A stretch of 64,000 bases of DNA. Source: Trichosphaerium sp. ATCC 40318. Its lineage: Eukaryota > Protista > Tubulinea. Both the position numbers and the translations under genes were made by a program. The notes beneath the pieces were generated by a model, which was given only the letters and a program-made list of their open reading frames with translations, did not search any database and was not told the DNA's origin. Position 1 is the stretch's first letter; each line of letters starts with the position of its first letter. The DNA lies in the NCBI GenBank assembly GCA_038496445.1, contig JALMLS010000062.1:558001-622000 (forward strand), given 5' to 3'. Shown piece after piece: positions 3,701 to 23,255 of this stretch.

Positions 3701-6700
3701 CATCAAGTACTAGCAATGTCACTAGTTATTATATGTTGCAGAGAATCATTCGTTGAAGGATCTTTTGCCACTGTTGGGTTAGGTATAACTTTTTTGGTTT
3801 CTATCGAACCTTTTTTTTTTTTCTTGGTATTGTTTTCTCTTATGCTCACTATTTCTATCAGCGCAAACTGCTCATGCTAGAGAGCTTGCAAAAGCATTCT
3901 TTTTTCAAAACGCAGGACAAGCAGGTGTACATAGTAGCAATGGTACTATGTGTGTACGTACTGAGTATTATTCTCAAAAAATTCCTTTTTTTTTTCTTTG
4001 ACAGTTTGGGTCTCTAAGTATTTTTTTAGCTTATGTACTCTCCTGGGCAATGTGCACTCAGCACACATATGGCTCGTGTATTGAGACCAATATGGACTGA
4101 ATCTATAATCATTAAAGTCAGCAAAGAGACTATCTACAGTGAGATGGCATACGCAGAATACGTTCCTTATGTTAATGAATATCATCAAAACAGGTACGTT
4201 TTGTAATGGCAACCAAAAACCAACAAATTTGTCCTTGGGCTATTTGTATCATTGTTAACTGTATTCTAGTGATGACCCTATATTTGTGTGTCGTCTAAGT
4301 AGCGAACAATTGCGTAGTATAGAAACACAACTGAACGGCATAAAATTGTTCCTTGAAGAGAGTATCCTTTTTTTTTTTTATTTTTTTTCGAGATAGAGAC
4401 TCGAGTTTGTTCTTTGTTTCTTTGAACCCTCTTTCTGTTTTTTTCTTTCTTGGCCTTGACTTGTTTTAAAGATAATCAATTCGCTCCTATCAGACCTTAT
4501 ACTGAAATACCTCCTACACTTAGTCATCAACAAAAAGCGAACCTTCAAGATCAACAAGCAAAATCAAATATGCACTTACTTTTGCTTCATACACTAGAGT
4601 TTGTTGCATTGCTTCGTCTTCTTGTAGATAATATCATACCACTCATCATAAAGGAGTATGTGTTATCCACGTTATTCAGTGTATTCTTTATTGACGTTTC
4701 TTGTTAGGCTTCCAGAAGCACTTGGAAAGCGATTGAATGGCGTCAAATTTAATCAATACTTGATAGAGACTAGTGGAAGATTACTTACTGGTGAGATTAT
4801 TCGTGCATTGATACAGGTTGCTCAAAGATCTGACTCTGTAGTACGTATCATTACTTTTAAAATACTTGATTTTATCACGTGTTTGTGGCGTTGTTTTGGC
4901 GTTTTCTTAGAACAGAACGTTTCTATGAAGTTGGGTTTTGTGATTTATAATTGGTTTTAGCATAATGCGAGCATCAGCGATAAATTAAAGAGTAGATGTA
5001 AAAATCTATTCTCAGATCAAGAGCGTACTATATATAGAGGTATTGAGCTACTTAACATGGCAAAAACTACACAAAATATCGAACAAAGAGATCAATTCCT
5101 TAGAAGCTCATTGCAGGTAGGAATTTATTTATTTTTTATTTGTCTTTTGAATACTGGAATTTATATTGTATTTTTGCTGTTTGTTACATATTTATTGCAT
5201 ACACTATTGTGCTGTGGAACAATTTTGTTTGGTTTTTTAAAACTGATTTTCTTTGGATGGTGTTATTGATTGTTTCTTTACTTTTATTTTTTAATGTGTT
5301 GACAATCCTTTGTAGTTATTTTGTCGTTGTCCTGGTGGTTTGGAATTATCGAATATAATGGCTAGTTATCGGTATTTACGTTTTTATGATGGTGTTATAC
5401 AGCTTGCCATCAGAAGTGCACAATGTTATGATCCTACAGGCAAGTGCATAAACCCTTTTTTCCCACTTTTTTCCGAAGTATTAATTTCTGTTTCGTTTTA
5501 GATTCTGCTTTGGTTTTCTTTAAGAACGCACAAGATATGACAGACTTACAAAGAAAGAATACTCATGATAAATACAGTTATCGTTGTCTTTGTTATAAGT
5601 ACATTTTTGATGCAATGACACAAGACCTTATGGTTGTGGAGGATAACCAATCAGGTACAGCTAACAATCGCACTTTTTCTTCTTATTAATGTCTTTTAGA
5701 ATACAGTATGCCTGACGATCCAGCCACTGGTCGCCCATTCCCTAAGAGGCCTCCTATAACAGCTCGCAACAGAGAGGTGCGTGAGAGAGTGTTGACTTGG
5801 TTTTTTTTTTCGTAATTTCTTATGTGATACTAGTTTCTCAAGAAGAACTTCGTTATTACTTGTCTTGGTGCTGATGATGAACTGTTCCATTATATTTTAT
5901 ACCAATGGTGGTTGGACAATGGTGGTATGAACCACTTACTTCACGTACGTACATAGATAGACAAGGAGTATTGTTAGTTTGTTTTTTTCTGGCTTACATT
6001 AATTTTTTTTACAGTTTCAACCTTTGTACATGGAGGAGTTCTTGAGGCACTACTGTCCTGATGAGACTGATGCAAAAGATATTCTATGGAGGTATTACAT
6101 TACTCCAGGTATTGATCGATACTCCGATGCTGCATTCTCGTTGTATGAGACCGGAAGCAAAGAGTGCGTACCTTTTTCACTTTTGCCACTTCAGCTTTCT
6201 CCTTAATCGTTCTAACACCTCTGCAGTTCGGACCACTTAATTTTGGAAGATAGAATGGAATACCTTGCTAAAGCCAGAGCATATGCACAACACAGTATGG
6301 AACAAAGTACGTACCCTGAAAGCTTTTATCCTTTAAACGAAATTTGAAGATTTTCGCAAAGCTATTGGACTCTTTGCCCTTTTAAGTTGGTTAATTACTC
6401 ATTTCTCATAGACAATGTCGATAAAAGTCAGTCAAAGATGACAACAGATGTTCTGAGAGCAATTGAAACGAGTATACAAGTGCTAACTGTACAGAGAAAA
6501 ATCAGAGAAGAATTAGCAAATAGCGAGCAAGTTCCTGATATTAAAGCTGCTGCCTTGCATGATCTTAACCATAGAGTGCATCCTTTGGATACTGTACGTT
6601 GTATTTGATACAAACACGATGCACATAAGCATCATACAACACCTCATCAGCTGATTTTTCTTTTTAGTTGCTTAACACATATGCGGTTAAGTTTGTACTC

Positions 6701-7567
6701 TATGAGTCTGCTTTACATTGCTTTAAAGCCGCTGGTACTGTTGATCTACCTATTGTTACAAAATTATGGGCTTGTCTTCTTGAAGGAGAGATAATTAAGA
6801 TTAATCTATGGGAAGTGAATAATCCAGGACAACCAGGAAACCGTAGTGAGGCGATTAAGAAAAAATTGGTTAAACTCGGTAAGAGATGTTTGCCTTGATT
6901 GTTTTGTTACTTATGTTGACTTTAGGTACTGATTTCTATCCTTCCGATCATGTGTTCCCTGTACATGAAATAGCTGCAATAGTTGAAGACTATTCTAAGC
7001 AGATACGTGATCATGAGGCTTCATCTGCTATTGTAAGATTTTTTGTTGATTGGCTTTTTTTTGGTTGTCTTATCTGACATTCTTTTTAGCACACAGGACT
7101 TTCTTGGGATATTGAGTGGGTAGCACAAGCTTTTAGAGAAATTGGTGTAAACTGGTTGACGATTTTTGATAGCTACTCACGTGTAGTATCGATGGTAAGT
7201 CCAAATTTTCTGAATAATTTTTTATTCTCCAACTTTTTTTTCCCTATTTTTGACTCGTCTTGTGTACTCCCACGTGGGCTCATTTTTTTTCTTTTAGAGC
7301 ACGTGGCAAGAACCTTCCAAACAAATACATATTGTATCAGTTATGGCGTATGTTATTCGACAACTTGCAAAGGAGACCTTTAATGATACAAGACCTGGTG
7401 ATATTGCTCAATTCAGAATGAGACATGTTCCTGATGATTTGAATGGATTGATACAAACTATTGAGAGTATTAAGACACTTCAATCAAAAGAACTCTCTCT
7501 TAAACTTAAAGGTCTTTTAACAAATGTTACAAATGCATTACAGACAGGAAGGTTTACGCTTGAATGA
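778..7567 (+). CDS. NUP155: Nucleoporin Nup155/Nup170 (multi-exon)
   Basis: Exon peptides match Nup155-family blocks: PLPNALREQFQ/MQCKSFMGMFPEIQRAWLTFDHKLFLWDY, GRIFASGVDGHLYEVHY, YRYLRFYDGVIQLAIRSAQCYDP, FYPSDHVFPV. Stop TGA at 7565-7567. Confidence 0.93.
4362..4471 (+). other. U12-type (minor) GT-AG intron in Nup155
   Basis: Donor GTATCCTTT at 4362. Branch-like GCCTTGAC at 4453-4460, about 12 nt from the AG. Splicing joins ...FLEE-N-NQFAP in frame. Confidence 0.8.
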
Positions 7568-7929
7568 TGAAAGAACAAAACATCTTTAATAAAATACAAA
7601 AGAAAATTTTTACCACTCGTAAAAACCAAACTGGGTGTACCCCGCGGTTGTAAATGGAAAGAGCAAGTGTGCACTGTTAACAAGTTGATCTTGAGTTATC
7701 GACTTGAACTATGGTTGGTCCAACAAATAGCCACGTGGATAAACAAATGAGTTTGCAAGCACGATAATTTAAGCAAAGTCTCAACAGACGAAGGAACGAT
7801 TTCCAAAAAAAATCAACTCCAACCTTCAAACTATCACCACTTAAGTGAGGGCGCCTCGCCGTGTTAGTTTAAACAGTTAACTCGCAAAGTTGTAAACGTA
7901 TTTGTCGGCGATTAATCACGTGATACCAA

Positions 7930-9381
7930 ATGTCAGCAAAGATTGGCCCTTACAAACGTACTAAAACAAGACATTATACTTTATTAGATACTCCTCATGA
8001 TATACAACGTTATTTATGCACTTTCGACGCTGAAACGTTTTTTAAATTCAACTGTCTGTCTAAAAGGGCAGCAATCAACACTCATTACAATACCAAGCTC
8101 GAACAGAGTGGTATTTGGCTATATTGGTACCCTTCCGGGAAGCTACAGTATAATGTTATGATGGCAGATGGAAAGAAGAATGGTGAAACTAAGGGGTGGT
8201 ACGAGTCTGGAGGACTCAAGTTTCTTTGTATGTATCTTAATGATAAGGCTAATGGTGTACGAAAGTCGTGGCATGAAAATGGAGAACTGAAGTTTGAAAC
8301 AATGTATGTTAATGGCAGTAGACATGGTGTTGAAACGCTATGGTTTGACAATGGACAAGTTGAGGCACGGTGTAATTGGGTTGATGATAAGCTTGAAGGT
8401 TTACAACATAGATGGTTCAAGAGTGGTCTAAAAAAGGCAGAGTGTATGTATGTTAAGGGTAAAAAGAATGGTGAGTTAAAGTTGTGGAGTACCAATGGAC
8501 AAATTGTTCAACATGGTTTTTATATTGATAGTAAACAACATGGTGAGTGTAAATGGTGGTATGATAGTGGTCAACTCATGGAACATTCTATTTTTCTATA
8601 TGGTAAGAAGAATGGAAAGCGTTCAGAGTGGTATGAGAATGGACAACTTAAAACTGAAGTTGTTTTTGTCAATGGCAAAGAGAATGGCGAGTTTAATGAA
8701 TGGCATGAGAATGGACAACGTAAAGCGCAGTGTATGTACAATAATGGTGATGAGGAAGGCGAGCTTATTACTTGGTTTGAGAATGGAAGTCGTAGGTGTC
8801 AACGTACTTTTGTTAAAGGTGTGAAGCAAGGACAACATAATCAGTGGTATGAAAATGGACAACTACACATTCAGAATAACTTTATTGCTGGCAAGGAAAG
8901 TGGCATGTACAAGCAATGGTATGAAACTGGAGTACTTGAACTACAAACTGTTTATGTTGATGGTAAGGAGAATGGAACGCATGATGAGTGGTATGAGAAT
9001 GGAAAAGTGAGGTTACAATGCATCTTTATCAATGGTAAGAAGAATGGTAAGTATGAGGAGTGGTATGAGAACGGAAAAGTCAAGGAACAATCGTTGCATG
9101 TTGATGATAAGTACCAAGGTGAGGTAAAGCAGTGGTATGAAAACGGGCAGCTCAGGGTAAACTGTATGTATGTTGATGGCAAAAAACATGGTGAGGCTAA
9201 GGCATGGTACGAGAACGGAAAGTTGAAAGTTCAAGGCATGTTTGAAAATGGGTTAATGAATGGCGAATTTAAGAAGTGGTATGAGAATGGTCAAATTCAC
9301 TCCATAAGCTTTTACCACCATGACATAAAACATGGTGTAAAGGAGTGGGCATCAGATGGTCATTTAAAGACATGGGGTTGA
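7930..9381 (+). CDS. Intronless F-box-like + MORN_2 (YwqK-type) repeat protein
   Basis: 483-aa ORF with ~17 repeats of 24 aa (WYENGQL...Y.NGK.NG). The N-terminus LLDTPHDIQRYL..F...LSKR is F-box-like and shared with two paralogs in this window. Confidence 0.85.
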   Translation: MSAKIGPYKRTKTRHYTLLDTPHDIQRYLCTFDAETFFKFNCLSKRAAINTHYNTKLEQSGIWLYWYPSGKLQYNVMMADGKKNGETKGWYESGGLKFLCMYLNDKANGVRKSWHENGELKFETMYVNGSRHGVETLWFDNGQVEARCNWVDDKLEGLQHRWFKSGLKKAECMYVKGKKNGELKLWSTNGQIVQHGFYIDSKQHGECKWWYDSGQLMEHSIFLYGKKNGKRSEWYENGQLKTEVVFVNGKENGEFNEWHENGQRKAQCMYNNGDEEGELITWFENGSRRCQRTFVKGVKQGQHNQWYENGQLHIQNNFIAGKESGMYKQWYETGVLELQTVYVDGKENGTHDEWYENGKVRLQCIFINGKKNGKYEEWYENGKVKEQSLHVDDKYQGEVKQWYENGQLRVNCMYVDGKKHGEAKAWYENGKLKVQGMFENGLMNGEFKKWYENGQIHSISFYHHDIKHGVKEWASDGHLKTWG

Positions 9382-10094
9382 TAAAAATGGACTATTAATT
9401 CGGAGAATGCATCAACAAGCTCCGTTATAGAAAAAACCAAATAAATCTTTAGAGAGTGAAGATTCTCCTGTTGGGTTTCCGCTTTAGGGTTGCCGTGTTT
9501 ATTCAATTTTGAAGTTTACACAGAAAGAGGGTACATATGAAGTATGTGTTTGTTTAGGCAGTCTGCTTCACATTTTTTTGTTTATCTTGAAGCTTGTTGA
9601 TTTATAAGTTTTTTTGTACTTCCGCAGTGGCTGTGGTGGTTTGACAAGGAAATCCCTTTATACCAATGAGCTGTAATCCAATGTCCATAACTATTTATGC
9701 CTCATGGTACAGTAGTGCATGGGAGGAAAACAAATGTTGCTCCCGCTTGCAAGCACGTATTGATGCTAAACACATTCATAAGATTAACAAACCACTTAGC
9801 TTAGCATCCATCGTACCTAGTGTACACTTTCTTAGGCTCATCAAGTACATTATAATACAACAAGTGATGAATCAATTGATTCATCCTTATTACAAGAACG
9901 CAGAACGTGTGGAAAGTCCGCAATGCAATACAAGTTGAGGGACATTCGAAAAGAAACTAAAATCAATAAACAAACATAACAATTGACAGTACATAATTCT
10001 CATGGCTTCGCCTCAGTACTCTACGCCATCTTAACTCTGTAAAACAATTCACTGGAGCAGCTCTAGACAGTAACAGACTAATCCAGTGTGCATG

Positions 10095-13000
10095 CAAACT
10101 ATGTTACTTGCCTAAAGTGCGCCCACAGTACACGTCAAGTGAGTGAAAATACAATAAAAATTATTCCCTTTGCGAGTCATTAGGTTGTGTAAGGTCCTCA
10201 CTCAGTAGTGCTTAAAACCATTGGACGGAAACAAAGACAGCTGCTCAGAAACCATCTAGATGTGCTTATAAACGTGACAGAAACTAGACATTCTGGGAAC
10301 CAAACTTAGAATTTGAACTGTATAATGAGTTTACTGAGTACGATTCACTTAAAATACGTTAAGCGTTACTTTCTGTTGACATTTATCCGTTCTTGCTAAC
10401 GCTCAACCAACGTCTACTTTGTATTTAATTGCGTTATCTCTCAAAAATGAACTCAGGCAACGATTTATCTCAAATACCGCTTGAGGTGACGTTATAATGC
10501 TTGTACACAAGGTAAAATCGCTAACGTAACCGTATTAGATCGCTCACACGATATTTATGTTAATACCCATCAAACAAACCGGCAAGTCGTTTTTGACGCG
10601 TATTTAACGCTAAAATGAATAGGTATTCTTCCATTGGTGTCAAAGAGTTGGAAAAAGATGTATTCCGCTGAATCTCTTTGGGTACGCATCTTACGCATCC
10701 AATACTTGCCCTAACGTGGTTGCAACAATAGGCGATGATTTGTAGCAAATATAAATGGGTTCGCCGTCTGCCAAAAGGTATGACATGGAAACAACTGTTC
10801 AAAGACCGATATCCACTCCATGAATACATGTCATCACTTAGACTTGTAAAAGAAGGTACGACTACAACTTTATGTTATTTATTCACGCACGTGACTTTTA
10901 TTATTCTTGTAGAAGAACATGATCAACTCTTACGTTTCTCAAATGACAATACAGAGGTCACGTATGTTGGTGAAAATAACAAATCTAGGGTAAAAGAAAA
11001 TACTTTGTGGAAAAAAACCAAGTGAGTTTGATGTTGTTTAGAGTTGTCAAGCATCACATCCAATGAGACCACTTCCTTTTGGTAAAATTACATCAGTATC
11101 ATACTACGAGATCTATGTTATTGATACCCAAGAAGATCCTGCGTGAGTGGTTATGCTCAGTTGTGTACTAACTTCAAAATAGTGTTATTGGTATGGGTGC
11201 TGCTCTGAAACATTTTGAAAAAACCAAGGCGTTGCCAGGATGTAGAAAGTGTTCATATGGATATCACGGGTAATACTTGATTCCAATACAAAGTGTTTAT
11301 TAATTGTTTACGTTTTTTTAGAGATGATGGTGGCTTCTACTTTCGTAAGATGGGCTTTTTTGTTGTGCAATCAAAAAGTGATGGACTTTATGTTTAATGT
11401 GTTTTACTTTTAGAAAATGCATGGACATACACATTTAAAGAAAAGTGGGGACTTCATGATACAATTGGATGTGGGTTTGACTTTCAAGAAAAAGAAATGT
11501 TCTTTACAAAGAATGGCAACTTTATTGGCGTTATTCCTTATGTACTACTTCTTTTTCTTTTGTTTTCCTATTTTTTCATGACTGTTGTTTGTAGCCTGAT
11601 ATTGAAGCACAAATGTTCTTTCCAACTATTGGCATGAGATCAAACAGTGCCAAGTGTAGTGTAAACTTTGGAAAAGAACCATTTCGATTTGATGTGATTG
11701 CATACATTGACAAGAAATGTGAACGTACAACTTTCTTTTTTTAAACTCTTCAAAATATTCATACGTTCTAAATCATCTTTGTTTAAGTTGCTGATCATCC
11801 ATTGAAGAATCCAGTAGTACCCAAGGTACTTTGAATGCAATCAATTTGATTTTTAAGTATACAATAGTGGAGGGATGCCCCAATAGACTGGAACGAGTTA
11901 CTAGAAGGCCACTCAAATTTTTATTGGATGCTCGACCAGATTAGTAAGTCAAGTGCTACTTGTTAATATACTTACCACATACACAGCTATACTTGGTGTA
12001 TCAGCTTTCAAAAATCGTAAATTGATGAACTACATCAAGGAAGGCCTTGCTCAAATCCCAGGCTTCGATGCAAATACAGCATCATCGTCAGTAAGCTTTT
12101 TTTTTTCCTTCAACAAAAACAACTTTAGATCCTTATTGTTTTCTCTCATTACAGGATATTCACGAAATGCTTTCATACACTACACAAATTCAAACAATAA
12201 ACAACATCGAAACTGCAATGTGGCGCGCATATGATGGTGAAGATCCAGGACTACGTCTACCTCAAGTTATGTCTTTGCACGAATATTTTTTATTTATTTC
12301 AAAACCGGGAACACCATGGCAAAATGAGTTCTTACCAATGATGGAACCATTCTTCCTTGACAAAGATGTTTATAAACCTAGTACGCTTATATTTACAACA
12401 TCATCAATATTGTAGATACTAATAACGGAACTCTATCATAATAGGTGACAGCGACAGTGTGAAAATGGAACTAGTTAAAACATACATCCCAATCATCATA
12501 GCACAACACACAAAACAATCGTACTCTTTCTAGTGGCTTTTCAATACTTTGTTACACGTGCACATTATTGGTTTTGACTTATAAATTGATAATAGGCTTG
12601 AGATGTATTTCACTTATCTTGAATCTCCAGATATACCAGACCATCATGATTTCATCAGATTTATTGCTTTGAAATTTGTACAATACCCATCTTCTGTTAC
12701 AAATGATTTTCTCACTACAGTGGTTAGGAATGTGCTGATGGGAATATATCAGATAAAGAAATGCGTGATGCAGCAAGATCGTACGAAATAAAATACATGT
12801 CATACTTTTTGGTTTGAAGTCTAACAGTATTACCTTTAGTATCTGCATTAAGATGTTTGCTGATGCTATCAACCCTCCAAAACCAAAAACGAATGCTATT
12901 ACTAAAGCCTTTGATGTGTTTCACTTTATATTCTTTCCTGTAATTTACCTATCAACCTCGTGCGTCTTCTCTTTTTATTATGGTTTATTTTAAGTAAAAA

Positions 13001-13175
13001 CTTACTGACTTATCTATTAGGATATACCATGTCCCTTACTATTTTATTCGCTCTGTAAACACTTTGTGGCGCTACATAAGTTCGTTGTGGAAGCGGTAGA
13101 GTTCTAGAAGGAAGTGTATTATGATTTGGTCAAACCAAACAAGACCTTTTTAGAGTGATTGTAATTACAAAATAA
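10095..13175 (+). repeat. Left arm of ~3.1 kb inverted repeat (partner 15180-18270)
   Basis: Reverse-complement identity is visible along the arm. For example, 12885-13050 vs 15320-15480 is essentially identical, and 10095-10200 vs 18155-18270 is similar. Ends are approximate. Confidence 0.93.
10447..13107 (+). CDS. F-box + SPRY (RanBP9-like) domain protein, copy A
   Basis: Spliced F-box DLSQIPLEIAHTIFMLIPIKQTGILPLVSKSWKKMYSAESLW. SPRY motifs YYEIYVID, SYGYHGDDG, DTIGCGFDFQEKEMFFTKNG, FPTIGMRS, VNFGKEPFRFD. Ends VEAVEF-TAG. Confidence 0.88.
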
Positions 13176-13314
13176 AATCAAACTCAACCAACAAGTGCTC
13201 CTAGATCATAATATTCTAGACGCTGTACCAAATATAGGAATACACTACTTCACAGGAGTAGAATGATGAAAAAACTATCACTTCAGTAACTTTAAGTAGT
13301 TTGTTATGTGTTTA

Positions 13315-14202
13315 TTAACCAATGCTAACTGTTTTAGTCCACAAGCATCCATCTACATCTACAGCACGCAGGTTATACACAATCCCATTTCTGTACACAT
13401 CCACTTGTTTGAAGATTGTGGTGACTGTAGACCAACCAGCAAAGTCAACATAATAGAATGTTCCATTGGTTGCAGTGGTGGCATAGATACCGAATGTACT
13501 CACAGAAATCTGAACAAACTGTTGTGCGAATGATTCATCAAGATCAACCCATGCTGTTCCAATTGGATCTGTGGGAGTGACGCCATCCCTGTAACTGATT
13601 TTTCCATTCGGTTTAATGCCGTAAGGTACACCATCTTCATCTACATCAACATACTTGAGATTACCACTGACCTACACAAGCAATGAGTGTTGTTTCAAAA
13701 ACTGTGAAGAAAAGTACCAGTTGCCAAGGAGCAGTAGAGCTCGCTTTGTAGTAAATGAAGTTATTTGGATTCACACCCCAGATACCTCCACTTGGAGTCA
13801 CGCTCAGCTGTTTCAAGATACCAGGTACATGAACCCAATTAGAACCGGTATTAGATCCCTGTTTAGATTGTAAGTACTTTAAAACCACTAAAAATAACGT
13901 ACCGTAGAACCAAGGCGATAGAATATCAGGTTGTCATAGTTTACACCCCACACGTTACCGTTAACACCGACATCAAGTTGTTTGAGTTGTCCTGATATTC
14001 GATTGTCGTTGGGTACGTGGTAGATGGTTTCACAAGGAGTTATTCCCCATTCATCACTTGGTCCAATAGCGACCTGTACCAGATTGCGAGTGTATGGATG
14101 ACGATCCCATCCTGCAACTGTAGTTGATGGTGTATCAGTACTAGTTGCAGCATACGATACGCCAATGATAAGTAAAATATAAAATAAGAGATGCGTTGTC
14201 AT
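13315..14202 (-). CDS. Secreted tectonin/tachylectin-1-like beta-propeller lectin (3 exons)
   Basis: Hydrophobic signal peptide followed by tectonin-type repeats ISGQLKQLDVGVNGNVWGVN, VPGILKQLSVTPSGGIWGVN, VSGNLKYVDVDEDG. Confidence 0.85.
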
Positions 14203-15179
14203 TATTGAGATGTTGATTGTTTTATGTTGGTGTTTTTTGTTTTATTCTTCTTTGATTTATTTGCTGAATACTACAAACTAAAAACTAAAAACTGCCAAGT
14301 ACTTCATTGTTCACACTTTGTTCCACGCGCCAGAGAATATCTATGATTAGTTGAGACCAGGTATGTGAACATTGTATCACGAACTTACCCCAAACCGCGA
14401 GTCTATCACGTGATTTTTACAAACCACGTTTAAGTTTAACTAGGCGCTTGCGATATTGATAAAGATGATGTTGGATCTAGTTCGTTACAGAGATGACTCG
14501 TGGAACAACTTTTTCAGTGAAATTTTTATCCCGTCCACCCCGCCTGATACAATACAATCATCGATTAACTCGTACTAAATGGCCTTCAGCCAAAGTGCTA
14601 TCAACTTCACGATGCCACTGTATTTTATCGAACAACTTATTTGTTTGCTGGTCTGTATAAAAACTATTATTTGCACAAGCTAAGTCAATGTATTGTAGCA
14701 ACTAGCTGGGGAAACGAAAGCGTAATGAAGTTTATCCTGAAAAAAAAGCATGGCTGTACAAACCGGGTTTTACGGACGTTTGAGACTTAGGGAGGTTGGC
14801 TGCTAACGTAAAGTCAACAACCAAGCGTAACAACGGGTAGAGGCAATGACTACCAATGTACTCGGAACAGTTTTTGGTTTTTAGGTTGTTTTTATTGTCT
14901 GTGACTTTGAATAAAACAAGGGTCTCAGGCTTCGTGACCAAGCGGTCAAGCCAAGAGATACTTTCTCCTCCAATCAGGTGTTGTTGTTGTTTGTAGGAAC
15001 CAAAGGACAATAGGGTTCCAGCACTTTTAACAAAGAAACAATATACGCACGTGGTCTTTGCAAAATAATTCCATTTCACAGCGTTACATGCATCTGTTAC
15101 CTTTATAAACAACTTATTCGGTTAATCATTTATGTACTACAGAGAAACCAGTGATAGGTATTGTCCACAAAAAGGTCGA

Positions 15180-18100
15180 GTTTATTGTAATTACATTTCG
15201 GCTTCTGACCAGTTCATTCTATGATTGCTTTATTGTTTGAACCAAATCATGTATACACTTCCTTCCAGAACTCTATCGCTTCCACAAGGAACTTATGTAG
15301 TGCCATATGGTATTTATAGAGCGAATAAAATAGTAAGGGACATGGTATATCCTAATAGATAAGTCAGTAAGTTTTTACTTAAAATAAACCATAATAAAAA
15401 GAGAAGACGCACGAGGTTGATAGGTAAATTACAGGAAAGAATATAAAATGAAACACATCAAAGGCTTTAGTAATAGCATTCTTTTTTGGTTTTGGAGGGT
15501 TAACTATACTAGCATACATCTTTTTGCAGGTACTAAACTGTTAGACTTCAAGCCAATAGCGTGACATGTATTTTATTACGTACGATCTTGCTGCATCACG
15601 CATTTCTTTATCTGATATATTCTCATTAGCACACTCCTAACTCTTTTTGTGAGAAAATCATTTGTAACAGAAGATGGGTATTGTACAAGTTTAGCAGCAA
15701 TAAATTTGATGAAATCATGATGGTCTGGTATATCTGGAGATTCAAGATAAGTGGAATACATTTCAAGCCTATTATCAATTTATAAGTCAAAACCAATAAT
15801 GTGCACGTGTAACAAAGTATTGAAAAGCCACTAGAAAGAGTACGATTGTTTTGTATGTTGTGCTATAACGATTGGGATGCATGTTTTAACTAGTTCCATT
15901 TTCACACTGTCACTGTCACCTATTAGGATAGAGTTCCGTTATTAGTATCTACAATAGTGATGAAGTTGTAAATATAAGCGTACTAGGTTTATAAACATCT
16001 TCGTCAAGGAAGAATGGTTCAAGGAGAGGTAAGAACTCATTTTGCCATGGTATTTCAGGTGTTGAAATATATAAAACAAATTCGTTTAAAGCCACAACGT
16101 CACTGTAACGTAGTCCTGGATCTTCACCTTTGTATACATGCCACATTGCATTTTCTATTGCAGTAAATGATTGAAATCGTGCACCGTACGATAGTACTTC
16201 ATGAATATCCTGCCATGAAGAACAAATAAGGATCTAAAGTAACATCTTTTAGGAAAAAAATCGTACAGAAAACGATGCTGTATTTACATCAAAGCCTGGT
16301 ATTGGAGCAAGGCTTTCCTTGATGTAGTTCATCAATTTACGATTTTTGAAAGCTGATACACCAAGTATAGCTGTGTATATAGTAAGTATATTAACAAGTA
16401 GCACTTGACTTACTAATCTGGTCGAGCATCCAATTAATAGGTGAATATGAATCTAGTATTATGTTCCAGTCTATTGGGACATCCCTCCACTATTGTATAC
16501 TTAAAAATCAAATTGGTTACATTCAAAATACCTTGGGTACTACTGGATTCTTCAATGGATGATCAGCAACTTAAACAAAGATGATTTAGAACGTATGAAT
16601 ATTTTGAAGAGTTTCAAAAAAGAAAGTTGTACGTTCACATTTCTTGTCAATGTATGCAATCACATCAAATCGAAATGGTTCTTTTCCAAAGTTTACACTA
16701 CACTTAGCACTGTTTGATCTCATACCAATAGTTGGAAAGAACATTTGTGCTTCAATATCAGGCTACAAGCAACACAGTCATTAACAAAGTATGAAACAAA
16801 AAGAAAAAGAAGGAGTACATAAGGAATAACGCCAATAAAGTTGCCATTCTTTGTAAAGAACATTTCTTTTTCTTGAAAGTCAAACCCACATCCAATTGTA
16901 TCATGAAGTCCCCACTTTTCTTTAAATGTGTATGTCCATGCATTTTCTAAAAGTAAATCAAATTAAGCATAAAAGTCCATCACTTTTGATTGCACAACAA
17001 AAAAGCCATCTTACGAAAGTAGAAGCCACCATCACCTCTAAAAAAACACAAACAATTAATAAACACTTTCATTTAGAGCCAAGTATTACCCATGATATCC
17101 GTATGAACAGTTTTTACATCCTGGCAACGCCTTGGTTTTTTCATAATGCTTGATAGCAGCACCCATACCAATAACACTATTTTTGAAATTTATTAGCAAA
17201 ATTAGCTCATTAGCAAACCGCTTACCAAGGATGCTCACCGCTATCAATCACATAGATCTCGTAGTATGATACTGATGCGATTTTACCAAAGGGAAGTGGT
17301 CTCATTGGATGTGATGCTTGACAGCTCTAAATACGATTAAGCAATGCAATACAGAAAGAAGCATTCCTCACCATAGCCCTATCTTCGCCAATTTTTGTTA
17401 CCTCTGTATTGTCGTTTGAGAAACGTAAGAGTTGATCATGTTCTTCTACAAGAATAATAAAAGTCACGTGCGTCATAAATAACATAAAGTTGTAGTCGTA
17501 CCTTCTTTTACAAGTCTAAGTGATGACATGTATTCATGGAGTGGATATCGGTCTTTGAACAGTTGTTTCCATGTCATACCTTTTGGAAGATGGCGAACCC
17601 ATTTATATTTGCTACAAATCATCGCCTATTGTTATATACCATGTTAGGGTGAGTATTGGATGCGTAAGATGCGTACCCAAAGAGATTCAGCGGAATACAT
17701 CTTTTTCCAACTCTTTGACACTAATGGAAGAATACCTATTCATTTTTTAGCGTTAAATACGCGTCAAAAACGACTTGCCAGTTTGTTTGATGGGTATTAA
17801 CATAAATATCTTGTGAGCCATCTAATACGGTTACGTCAGCGATATTAGGTTGTTTGGAAGCGTTTTAACATCACCTCAAGCGGTATTTGAGATAAATCGT
17901 TGCCTGAGTTCATTTTTGAGAGATAACGCAATTAAATACAAAGTAGACGTTGGGTTCGAGCGTTAGCAAGAACGGATAAATGTCAACAGAAAGTAACGCT
18001 TAACGTATTTTAAGTGAATCGATCGTACTCAGTAAACTCATTACAGTTCAAATTCTAAGTTTGGTTCCCAGAATGTCTAATTTTTGGTCCCACAGAATTT

Positions 18101-18270
18101 CTTGTTTCCGTCATGTTTATAAGCACTACGCCAATAGTAGTAACACTAGATACAGGAGTGAGGAACCTTACACAACAAAATGACTTTCAAAGGGAATAAT
18201 TTTTATTGTATTTTCACTCACTTTGACCTGTACTGTGGGTTGCACTTGAGGCAAGTAACATAGTTTGAAT
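15180..18270 (-). repeat. Right arm of ~3.1 kb inverted repeat
   Basis: Reverse complement of 10095-13175, including upstream sequence and introns. Confidence 0.93.
15247..17913 (-). CDS. F-box + SPRY domain protein, copy B
   Basis: Same exon structure as copy A. ATG at 17913. Ends VEAIEFWKEVYT-TGA. Confidence 0.88.
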
Positions 18271-22047: not shown

Positions 22048-22800
22048 TTAGTTTTTATTTTCTTCTACTATTATTATATCATGCGACATAATGTCACTTT
22101 CTTTGATACCCTCAATATATTTACAGTTTTCTATAACTTCACCTCTTTTATTCCATTCCCTAAATTCACCATGTTTCATGTTATCCTTATAAAAGCAATT
22201 ATAACACAACTGGCCATTAATAAAATATTGCTTAAATTCTCCTTCTTTGAATCCATTTTGGTAAAAACAGTGTTCGTTTAACTGTCCGTTAGAAAACCAC
22301 GATTTAAATTCACCATCCTTATGACCATGTTTAAAAGTACATTCTCTTTGCTTAGTACCATCGTTGTAATACAGTATAAACGATCCATGCAGCACTCTGT
22401 TTAAGTAATCCTTACTTGACTTAATAGCACCACTTTGATAAAATTCCTTACAAGTTCCTTCTTTTTTACCGTCCTTATACATAATACTACTTCGTAATAT
22501 ACCATTATGCCAATAAATATCATATTGTCCATGTAGTTTACCATTACTAAAGATGCACTGAACCCATTTATGGCGTTCAGAAACGTTACAACTAAAATTC
22601 TCTCTACGTCGTACTTTTTCTCTTGTATTTTCATGCCACTTCTTGAAAGTACCATGCTTTTGTAATGCGCTATTAAACCGTGACGTTGTAGCTGTCTGGA
22701 AGCAAAGTAAAGGCCACTTGAAGAATATCTCTTTATCAATATTCTCAAATTCGTAATGGAGTTCAACCGGCATATCAAGAAGATGAATGCTCTCACTGAA
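22048..22800 (-). CDS. F-box-like + MORN_2 repeat protein (5' end uncertain)
   Basis: HLLDMPVELHYE...KWPLL...RFNSALQKHG followed by ~7 MORN_2 repeats. Body is intronless. Upstream ATG or exon not resolved. Confidence 0.75.
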   Translation of the reverse strand, partial: FSESIHLLDMPVELHYEFENIDKEIFFKWPLLCFQTATTSRFNSALQKHGTFKKWHENTREKVRRRENFSCNVSERHKWVQCIFSNGKLHGQYDIYWHNGILRSSIMYKDGKKEGTCKEFYQSGAIKSSKDYLNRVLHGSFILYYNDGTKQRECTFKHGHKDGEFKSWFSNGQLNEHCFYQNGFKEGEFKQYFINGQLCYNCFYKDNMKHGEFREWNKRGEVIENCKYIEGIKESDIMSHDIIIVEENKN

Positions 22801-23255
22801 CAAAAAAAAAATAGTTAGTCCAAAAACGTGATTAGTAATCGAAAAATCGAACAAAGTTTTAGCGCCTGAGCAAACATACTAGTGGCAGATAACTGGTGTC
22901 GCCCCATAGCAAAGGTAAGCGCTCACTACCTGAACTGTTTTCCAATTCAGACGCCATAGCAACGCTACTTAAAACCTAGAGCGTAGGATAGTTTTACACG
23001 TCGTTTCAAATAAAAAATGTAAAGAAGTGTGAGAACTCTAACCTTTCTGCCATTTTTGAATATAACACACGTAAATGCGTATATTTTATACAGTTTAAAT
23101 CTCGCTAGTAAGCTGCAAACAACAAAATTCAGCTGAAAGTAAAAAAAAACTGACTGAAATACTTCCATTGACTTTTTTGCTGGGCTTTTTTTTTTGTTTT
23201 ATTGAATTTTGAGATGATTTGTACAAGATTGCTCTAGGATTTTCGTTGATCGTAA

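Follow-up and report, generated by a model that had tools for sequence, protein, structure and literature searches.

An inverted F-box-SPRY gene pair in Trichosphaerium sp. ATCC 40318, probably patchworked by short gene conversion tracts

The locus described here is a pair of genes, A and B, that lie tail to tail in an inverted repeat of the amoeba Trichosphaerium sp. ATCC 40318 (Tubulinea). The stretch that was analysed, referred to as the window, comprises 64,000 nucleotides (nt) of assembly GCA_038496445.1 (contig JALMLS010000062.1, positions 558,001 to 622,000, forward strand). It is eukaryotic DNA with a guanine plus cytosine content of about 36%, and an Rfam search of the window returned zero matches. 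Both genes encode, in this order, an F-box, a conserved linker (exon 4), a SPRY domain, a helical region of about 218 amino acids (aa) and a hydrophobic tail. They belong to a family of 10-14 loci with a common exon structure in the same genome, five of which are located on this contig, and among these loci the inverted adjacent arrangement is confined to the A/B pair.

Gene models were derived from conserved GT/AG sites in an eight-sequence alignment that consists of the two arms and six paralogous loci of the same genome. Family, PDB and genome searches were run exon by exon, and exons were joined only for translation, substitution-rate estimates and hydropathy. The introns are 40-75 nt long, 17 per gene being of the GT-AG and one of the GC-AG type (intron 2 in gene A), and a U12-type 5′ signal was found in 0 of 18 introns. 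The reading frames are open in both genes, whose proteins are 85.9% identical (475 of 553 positions), and A and B are predicted to be a functional, convergent pair. The genes, the domains of gene A and the repeat are as follows.

10447 to 13099, plus strand: gene A, 19 exons, 554 aa, splice sites and open frame checked; exons 10447-10485, 10539-10581, 10623-10681, 10732-10855, 10913-10989, 11042-11142, 11183-11269, 11322-11344, 11414-11541, 11595-11724, 11788-11825, 11868-11943, 11987-12090, 12155-12380, 12445-12520, 12596-12677, 12728-12780, 12840-12959 and 13021-13099.
15273 to 17913, minus strand: gene B, 19 exons, 553 aa, splice pattern as in gene A; exons in transcript order 17913-17875, 17821-17779, 17735-17677, 17625-17502, 17445-17372, 17326-17226, 17176-17090, 17037-17015, 16946-16819, 16762-16633, 16569-16532, 16489-16414, 16370-16267, 16209-15984, 15919-15844, 15768-15687, 15636-15584, 15532-15413 and 15351-15273.
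10447 to 10681, plus strand: F-box, gene A exons 1-3, LSQIPLEIAHTIFMLIPIKQTGILPLVSKSWKKMYSAESLW; partial Pfam match, kept in all paralogues.
10913 to 11724, plus strand: SPRY domain, gene A exons 5-10; PF00622 match and PDB matches.
11788 to 12780, plus strand: post-SPRY region, gene A exons 11-17, about 218 aa; predicted helical, the fastest-evolving part, with a dN/dS (defined below) of 0.59-0.78.
12840 to 13099, plus strand: C-terminal tail, gene A exons 18-19; kept in distant paralogues, with a borderline hydrophobic segment at aa 508-535.
10100 to 13119, plus strand: left arm, from about 350 bp 5′ of the start of gene A to 20 bp beyond its stop codon.
15253 to 18260, minus strand: right arm, the inverted partner of the left arm.
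13120 to 15252, unstranded: spacer separating the arms, delimited by segment and alignment ends.

Thirteen collinear inverted segments connect 10137-13119 with 15253-18223, and in a global alignment the arms extend from about 10100 and 18260 on the outer side to 13119 and 15253 on the inner side, so that two arms of about 3.0 kb each flank a spacer of 2,133 bp. Over 10137-13119 the arms are 87.3% identical with gaps included (2622 matches, 328 mismatches and 55 gap columns). An earlier reading of the same letters, here called the original prediction, had described an 8.2 kb palindrome; the tail-to-tail arms are real, but they are about 87% identical overall rather than near-identical, and the locus is an inverted gene pair, not a near-perfect palindrome. 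The longest perfect runs are found at 11403-11546 (144 bp), 12925-13054 (130 bp), 10771-10881 (111 bp) and 12510-12601 (92 bp), and they are interspersed with blocks of 48-78% identity, for example 10981-11041, 11120-11182 and exon 14. Three tracts had been put at about 99-100% identity, introns included. Two of them agree with the alignment (12530-12600 at 100% and 12885-13050 at 98.8%), while 11600-11880 reaches only 97.5%; whole introns are indeed identical, though each is only 40-75 nt long. The contrasting peptides quoted at the time are genuine exon translations: TEVTYVGENNKSR versus TEVTKIGEDRAM at the end of exon 5, IDTQEDP versus IDSGEHP at the end of exon 6, and HEMLSYTTQIQTINNIETAMWRAYDG versus HEVLSYGARFQSFTAIENAMWHVYKG at the start of exon 14. 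The tracts and blocks on which the argument turns are listed below in left-arm coordinates.

12925 to 13054, plus strand: identical tract of 130 bp, partner 15318-15447; it holds a recent A-to-B conversion, seen when gene B of the window is compared with that of a second contig, C499.
12510 to 12601, plus strand: identical tract of 92 bp, partner 15763-15854, covering the whole of intron 15.
11403 to 11828, plus strand: near-identical block with exons 9-11 and introns 10-11, partner about 16529-16957; intron 9 lies inside and is moderately diverged.
10975 to 11200, plus strand: divergent block (exon 5 tail, intron 5, exon 6, intron 6 and exon 7 start), in which B groups with the paralogue L013 and part of A with the paralogue L014.
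11895 to 11935, plus strand: divergent island of 41 bp in exon 12, 66% identical, with more similar tracts on both sides.
12062 to 12380, plus strand: divergent block (exon 13 tail, intron 13 and exon 14, the latter 78% identical), in which B groups with L013.

At silent sites, A and B show a bimodal pattern of divergence along the gene. Differences are few in introns 2 (0/41), 4 (1/56), 10 (1/63), 15 (0/75) and 18 (0/61) and numerous in introns 5 (21/45, 47%), 6 (12/40, 30%) and 13 (16/57, 28%), and the heterogeneity among introns is strong (chi-square 130, 17 degrees of freedom, P=2e-19). When a Sawyer-type runs test is restricted to introns and third codon positions, A and B yield P=0.0002, with tracts at 12930-13054, 12518-12591 and 11654-11825, and A and L014 yield P=0.0005, with tracts at 11027-11077 and 10884-10959. 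L013 lies at C12:462 kb on the same contig, about 106 kb from the pair, and L014 at C12:542 kb, about 25 kb away.

The relationships among the copies change from block to block. B is near L013, with A as the outlier, in intron 5, exons 5 and 6, exon 12, intron 13, exon 14 and the start of exon 18; in intron 5, B and L013 differ at 6 of 45 positions against 21 of 45 for A and B, and in intron 13 at 5 of 55 against 16 of 57. A and B go together, with L013 distant, in intron 4, exon 10 and introns 14, 15, 16 and 18, intron 15 showing 0 of 75 differences between A and B and 22 of 64 between B and L013. Quartet-informative sites number 42-63 for the grouping of A with B, 34-40 for B with L013 and 11-15 for A with L013, and they are spatially clustered by block.

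One exchange was caught by comparing two separately assembled versions of the locus. The second of these, contig C499 (19,971 bp), runs collinear with window positions 5704-17725 at about 97% identity and carries its own copies of both genes, A2 and B2. Among the sites that vary between A, A2, B and B2, 254 are A/B differences fixed in both the window and C499, and the mosaic is therefore reproduced in independently assembled sequence. In intron 18, gene B of the window is the same as A and A2, whereas B2 differs at 8 of 61 positions and has several states and an insertion in common with L013; the window copy of B would therefore have taken up A sequence after the two locus copies separated. 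The tract concerned is at least 72 and at most 130 bp long. C499 is most likely the other haplotype of the locus, because similar twin contigs occur at a Skp1 locus. There, Skp1 matches are identical at matching offsets (G000:C88:17040-17308 and G000:C430:17197-17465), an indication that several regions are present as haplotype twins in the assembly.

With respect to direction, introns within the tracts shared by A and B are 13-34% diverged from L013, like A elsewhere in the gene and unlike B, which stands at about 10% in its unconverted blocks; A therefore appears to have been mostly the donor. Gene conversion between the arms is well supported and would have run mostly from A to B, as judged from these distances. 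The idea that an old duplication has been partly homogenised by conversion is borne out by the bimodal silent divergence, the runs test, the conflicting quartets and intron 18. Exchange between the two arms, as originally proposed, accounts for the A/B tracts, but the traffic is not arm-to-arm only: B carries L013-like blocks, and A shares tracts with L014.

The account that we favour, and regard as probable, is that the F-box-SPRY pair has been patchworked by repeated short conversions, with A as an old copy, B as a sister of L013, and selection not required. Gene A would represent an old lineage, and gene B and L013 younger sisters. Through repeated conversions of about 70-450 bp, in which A would mostly have been the donor and B the acceptor, about half of B would then have become A-type, and smaller exchanges, such as that of A with L014, would have added further patches. 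The process appears to be still under way, because one tract differs between the assembled locus copies. Tracts appear to favour strongly conserved exons (the SPRY core and the F-box) and to spill into the short flanking introns; conserved exons could supply the identity needed for starting recombination, and blocks that are already divergent would resist conversion. The need of recombination for sequence identity would by itself produce such a pattern, and a neutral account fits it equally well.

Several points weigh against this account. Splicing and transcription are predicted from the sequence, the identical tracts are those of the assembly, and the assignment of donor and acceptor depends on distances measured over introns of 40-75 nt. 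C499 might be a second locus rather than the other haplotype. A McDonald-Kreitman-like comparison gives 84:40 non-synonymous to synonymous (N:S) fixed differences between the genes against 12:16 within copies (P=0.017); the table contains two sequences per gene and is confounded by differences imported by conversion. This excess is suggestive and leaves room for adaptive divergence, which the conversion account does not need. On the protein side, the match of the F-box to its hidden Markov model (HMM) falls under the Pfam cut-off, and the hydropathy of the tail is borderline, with a Kyte-Doolittle maximum of 1.56 over 19 aa.

The best-surviving alternative, which we nevertheless consider unlikely, is that the arms are evened out by conversion save for those parts, chiefly the SPRY loops, in which diversifying or balancing selection maintains two substrate specificities, and that the pair is a diversifying receptor system. 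Its appeal lies in the distribution of changes within the SPRY domain. The A/B differences there fall into three patches (at the ends of exons 5 and 6 and in the middle of exon 7), and 18 of the 20 non-synonymous SPRY differences are concentrated in these short patches, which lie between conserved strands and are variable across the family. The exon 12 island, with a ratio of non-synonymous to synonymous substitution rates (dN/dS) of 0.90 over 13 codons, has in its A version no match elsewhere in the assembly except in the C499 copy, that is, no donor. The retention of the 254 fixed differences in both assembled copies and the McDonald-Kreitman-like excess also point in this direction; the latter test, however, is invalid if conversion imported the fixed differences, and there are two copies per gene.

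Compared pairwise, A and B have an overall dN/dS of 0.43. The SPRY domain stands at 0.26, its core at 0.05 and the three variable SPRY patches, which were picked post hoc, at 0.50, against 0.59 for the helical region; none of the regions has a value above 1. The ranking is the same in other pairs of paralogues, the helical region being fastest (0.35-0.78) and SPRY constrained (0.17-0.28), and genes A and B are under purifying selection. The divergent blocks have synonymous divergence (dS) of 0.3-0.6, and the adjoining introns are equally or more diverged; these blocks are therefore old or differently derived rather than islands of amino-acid change. Most protein divergence also lies outside the SPRY domain, since of about 99 non-synonymous differences the post-SPRY helical region holds 63 and SPRY 20. 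These tests lend no support to the proposal that selection keeps two SPRY specificities.

A far less probable explanation is that the identical tracts, or the difference between B and B2 in intron 18, are assembly or polishing artefacts in which reads of one arm corrected the other. Cross-talk of this kind can arise at identical tracts of 90-144 bp within a 3-kb inverted repeat, but the separately assembled C499 has the same identical tracts together with the shared A/B differences, many single differences that a collapse would erase are interleaved with the tracts, and the frames are intact in both genes. Polishing from arm to arm also cannot yield a switch of topology towards L013, some 106 kb off. 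Just as hard to credit is a recent inverted duplication without conversion, in which A and B would be young sisters and the divergent blocks would reflect faster local mutation or relaxed constraint: the variable blocks do match segments that vary in the protein family-wide, but in these blocks B is far nearer to L013 than to A, introns 5 and 13 included, the sites joining B with L013 clearly outnumber those of the A-L013 grouping, which serves as the noise topology, and uniform descent cannot place introns with 28-47% divergence beside introns with 0%.

Human Y-chromosome palindromes are subject to interlocus gene conversion between linked inverted copies. A study of Caenorhabditis paralogues (PMC3966223) likewise describes interlocus conversion between closely linked, often inverted duplicates. 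The present locus is similar to both in its inverted arms with a spacer, in its short non-reciprocal tracts that include introns (as indicated by the runs test, the topology switches and intron 18) and in that the nearest copies exchange more. It differs in that the 3 kb arms are about 87% identical, well below the more than 99% typical of conversion-maintained palindromes, and in that exchange extends to at least four family members over distances of up to about 106 kb, leaving a patchwork rather than concerted identity.

With regard to function, the domains of the proteins of genes A and B make a role as receptors for the substrates of SCF (Skp1-cullin-F-box) ubiquitin ligases most likely, and the proteins are possibly held at a membrane. 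The SPRY profile PF00622 matches exon 9 alone at 28.3 bits, over the cut-off of 26.3, and the PDB matches of the SPRY exon include the SPRY domains of DDX1, Vid30/Gid1, SPRYD3 and RyR. The Pfam F-box-like profile scores 17.3 bits (E=0.004; cut-off 24.3) on exon 3 alone, and the score falls short because the domain is split over three exons. Exons 1-2 contribute an LPxE-type start, and once spliced, exons 1-3 carry the N-terminal F-box motif, some 40-50 aa long, that is expected of F-box proteins. The SPRY match over the cut-off, together with the partial F-box match and its conservation in all paralogues, upholds the F-box-SPRY assignment that had been made from the letters. Genes for Skp1 are present in the same genome, with PF01466 matches over the cut-off at several loci.

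The post-SPRY region has no Pfam match. For its largest exon, exon 14, a profile search detected no relatives in 1.84 billion representative proteins and nothing relevant in PDB. The sole match to the exon 14 profile, a protein of 171 aa (P0001), is taken as a short-motif resemblance and not as homology; it contains five repeats of LLAAYTGGDPNVRS with the motif AYTGGDPNVRS, which resembles the invariant W..YKGEDPGLR of the F-box-SPRY family, and the likeness could be a shared short motif or chance. In one paralogue (L016/L008, at G000:C12:156 kb) intron 13 has been lost and exons 13 and 14 form one open frame. This merged segment of L016 (103 aa, eight-row alignment) is predicted to adopt an all-helical fold at low confidence (pLDDT 65.8, pTM 0.36). 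A LisH/CTLH identity of the region is unsupported: exons 13-14 and the merged exon of L016 gave no Pfam match at E of 10 or less, in an exon-by-exon search of low sensitivity.

Several known systems share parts of this architecture. FBXO45/FSN-1 ("F-box/SPRY domain-containing protein 1" of animals) has an F-box and a SPRY domain that ends the protein, is about 290 aa long and exists as a single conserved orthologue. The amoebal proteins resemble it in having an N-terminal F-box followed by SPRY and in the presumed role as ubiquitin-ligase substrate receptor; they differ in length (554 aa for gene A, with about 285 residues after SPRY) and in copy number (10-14 loci), and so fall outside that family in a comparison of architecture rather than orthology. 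No FBXO45 chain was among the PDB matches of the SPRY exon. Proteins of the RanBP9/Gid1 type carry LisH and CTLH/CRA domains after SPRY, and the same low-sensitivity exon-by-exon search showed no LisH, CTLH or CRA match in that position here. TRIM5alpha-like B30.2 restriction factors combine RING, B-box and coiled coil with PRY-SPRY and show positive selection in variable SPRY loops. The original comparison with TRIM5alpha holds loosely, in that a SPRY beta-sandwich sits on a ubiquitin-ligase module and differences cluster between strands; but the N-terminus is an F-box, the SPRY domain is of the DDX1/Gid1/SPRYD3 type, no RING, B-box, coiled coil or PRY appeared in the Pfam search of any exon, and the variable patches, with a pairwise dN/dS of 0.5, give no sign of positive selection.

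Expanded, fast-evolving families of cullin adaptors include the nematode F-box and MATH-BTB genes and the plant S-locus F-box genes. Like these, the present family has clustered paralogues with a conserved F-box and varying putative substrate-binding parts, and neighbouring genes with MORN_2 repeats are also candidate adaptors. Unlike these, it has no dN/dS above 1, is small, and varies mainly in the helical region and not in a known recognition domain. Intron-less MORN_2 repeat open reading frames (PF07661) flank the pair at 7930-9381 (plus strand, 483 aa, E=6e-56) and at 22048-22854 (minus strand, 268 aa, E=1e-16).

The spacer itself contains one further gene:

13315 to 14202, minus strand: tectonin-domain lectin gene, multi-exon, with a signal-peptide-like start and PF19193 matches; the extent given is that of the visible open exon pieces.

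The spacer tectonin block is 93.7% identical over 1 kb to a twin adjoining L014 (13315-14318 versus G000:C12:540752-541160). The twin is convergent to L014, and the F-box genes next to the two tectonin blocks are about 66% identical or unalignable in their 3′ halves; a two-gene block (F-box-SPRY plus tectonin) would therefore have been duplicated, with the 3′ half of the F-box gene later becoming unrelated. Exchange appears in this way to act also at a larger, block scale, as the tectonin block beside A and L014 indicates. In L014 (G000:C12:542 kb), exon 18 apparently runs into a stop codon ahead of the hydrophobic tail, and an exon 19 was not detected; this locus may be a tail-less variant or a truncated gene.

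The window contains 54 copies of the hexamer CACGTG, for example at 10888-10893 and 17465-17470, where shuffles that preserve dinucleotide composition contain 8.9 +/- 3.1. A copy of GCACGTGAC lies at the same place in intron 4 in all eight aligned family members, and the rest of intron 4 is unconserved in distant members despite this shared motif. CACGTG may be a widespread regulatory element. As a mark of the ends of conversion tracts it was rejected, the sites at 10888 and 12555 falling within tracts.

C499 differs from the window by two insertions. The spacer of C499 harbours a 7.35-kb Ty3/gypsy long terminal repeat (LTR) retrotransposon (C499 9692-17035; L011:9692-10000 plus L012:1-7035) that is absent from the window; it encodes gag, protease, reverse transcriptase/RNase H and integrase with frame breaks, and its 357-bp LTRs are 99.7% identical. 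A 0.64-kb insertion (L011:4606-5243), likewise absent from the window, has terminal inverted repeats of about 19 bp and a TTAA-type target duplication, and sits 85 bp 5′ of the ATG of the A copy; it is likely to be a non-autonomous DNA transposon that has inserted into the promoter. An apparent TAA in exon 14 of the C499 copy was dismissed, as it sits in an intron.

The mechanism of conversion proposed here is of a known kind and fairly ordinary in the evolution of gene families. The family that it acts upon, with its F-box, SPRY domain, helical region and hydrophobic tail, was not found described in the literature; it is lineage-specific, has at least ten members and is without described relatives. 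The locus offers a small, clean protist case of short-tract conversion building chimeric receptor genes, in which donor, acceptor and two further partners can be named and one event is caught between locus copies. If the variable parts bind substrates, it would show how an amoeba diversifies the targeting of its ubiquitin ligases. More speculatively, and in our judgement improbably, the family may constitute an amoeba-specific, possibly membrane-tethered SCF repertoire whose SPRY loops and helical region are purposely diversified by conversion for ubiquitin-based recognition of non-self or prey. Were this true, its logic would be analogous to that of conversion-diversified immune receptors, in a family that lies beside genes for a tectonin lectin and for adaptors.

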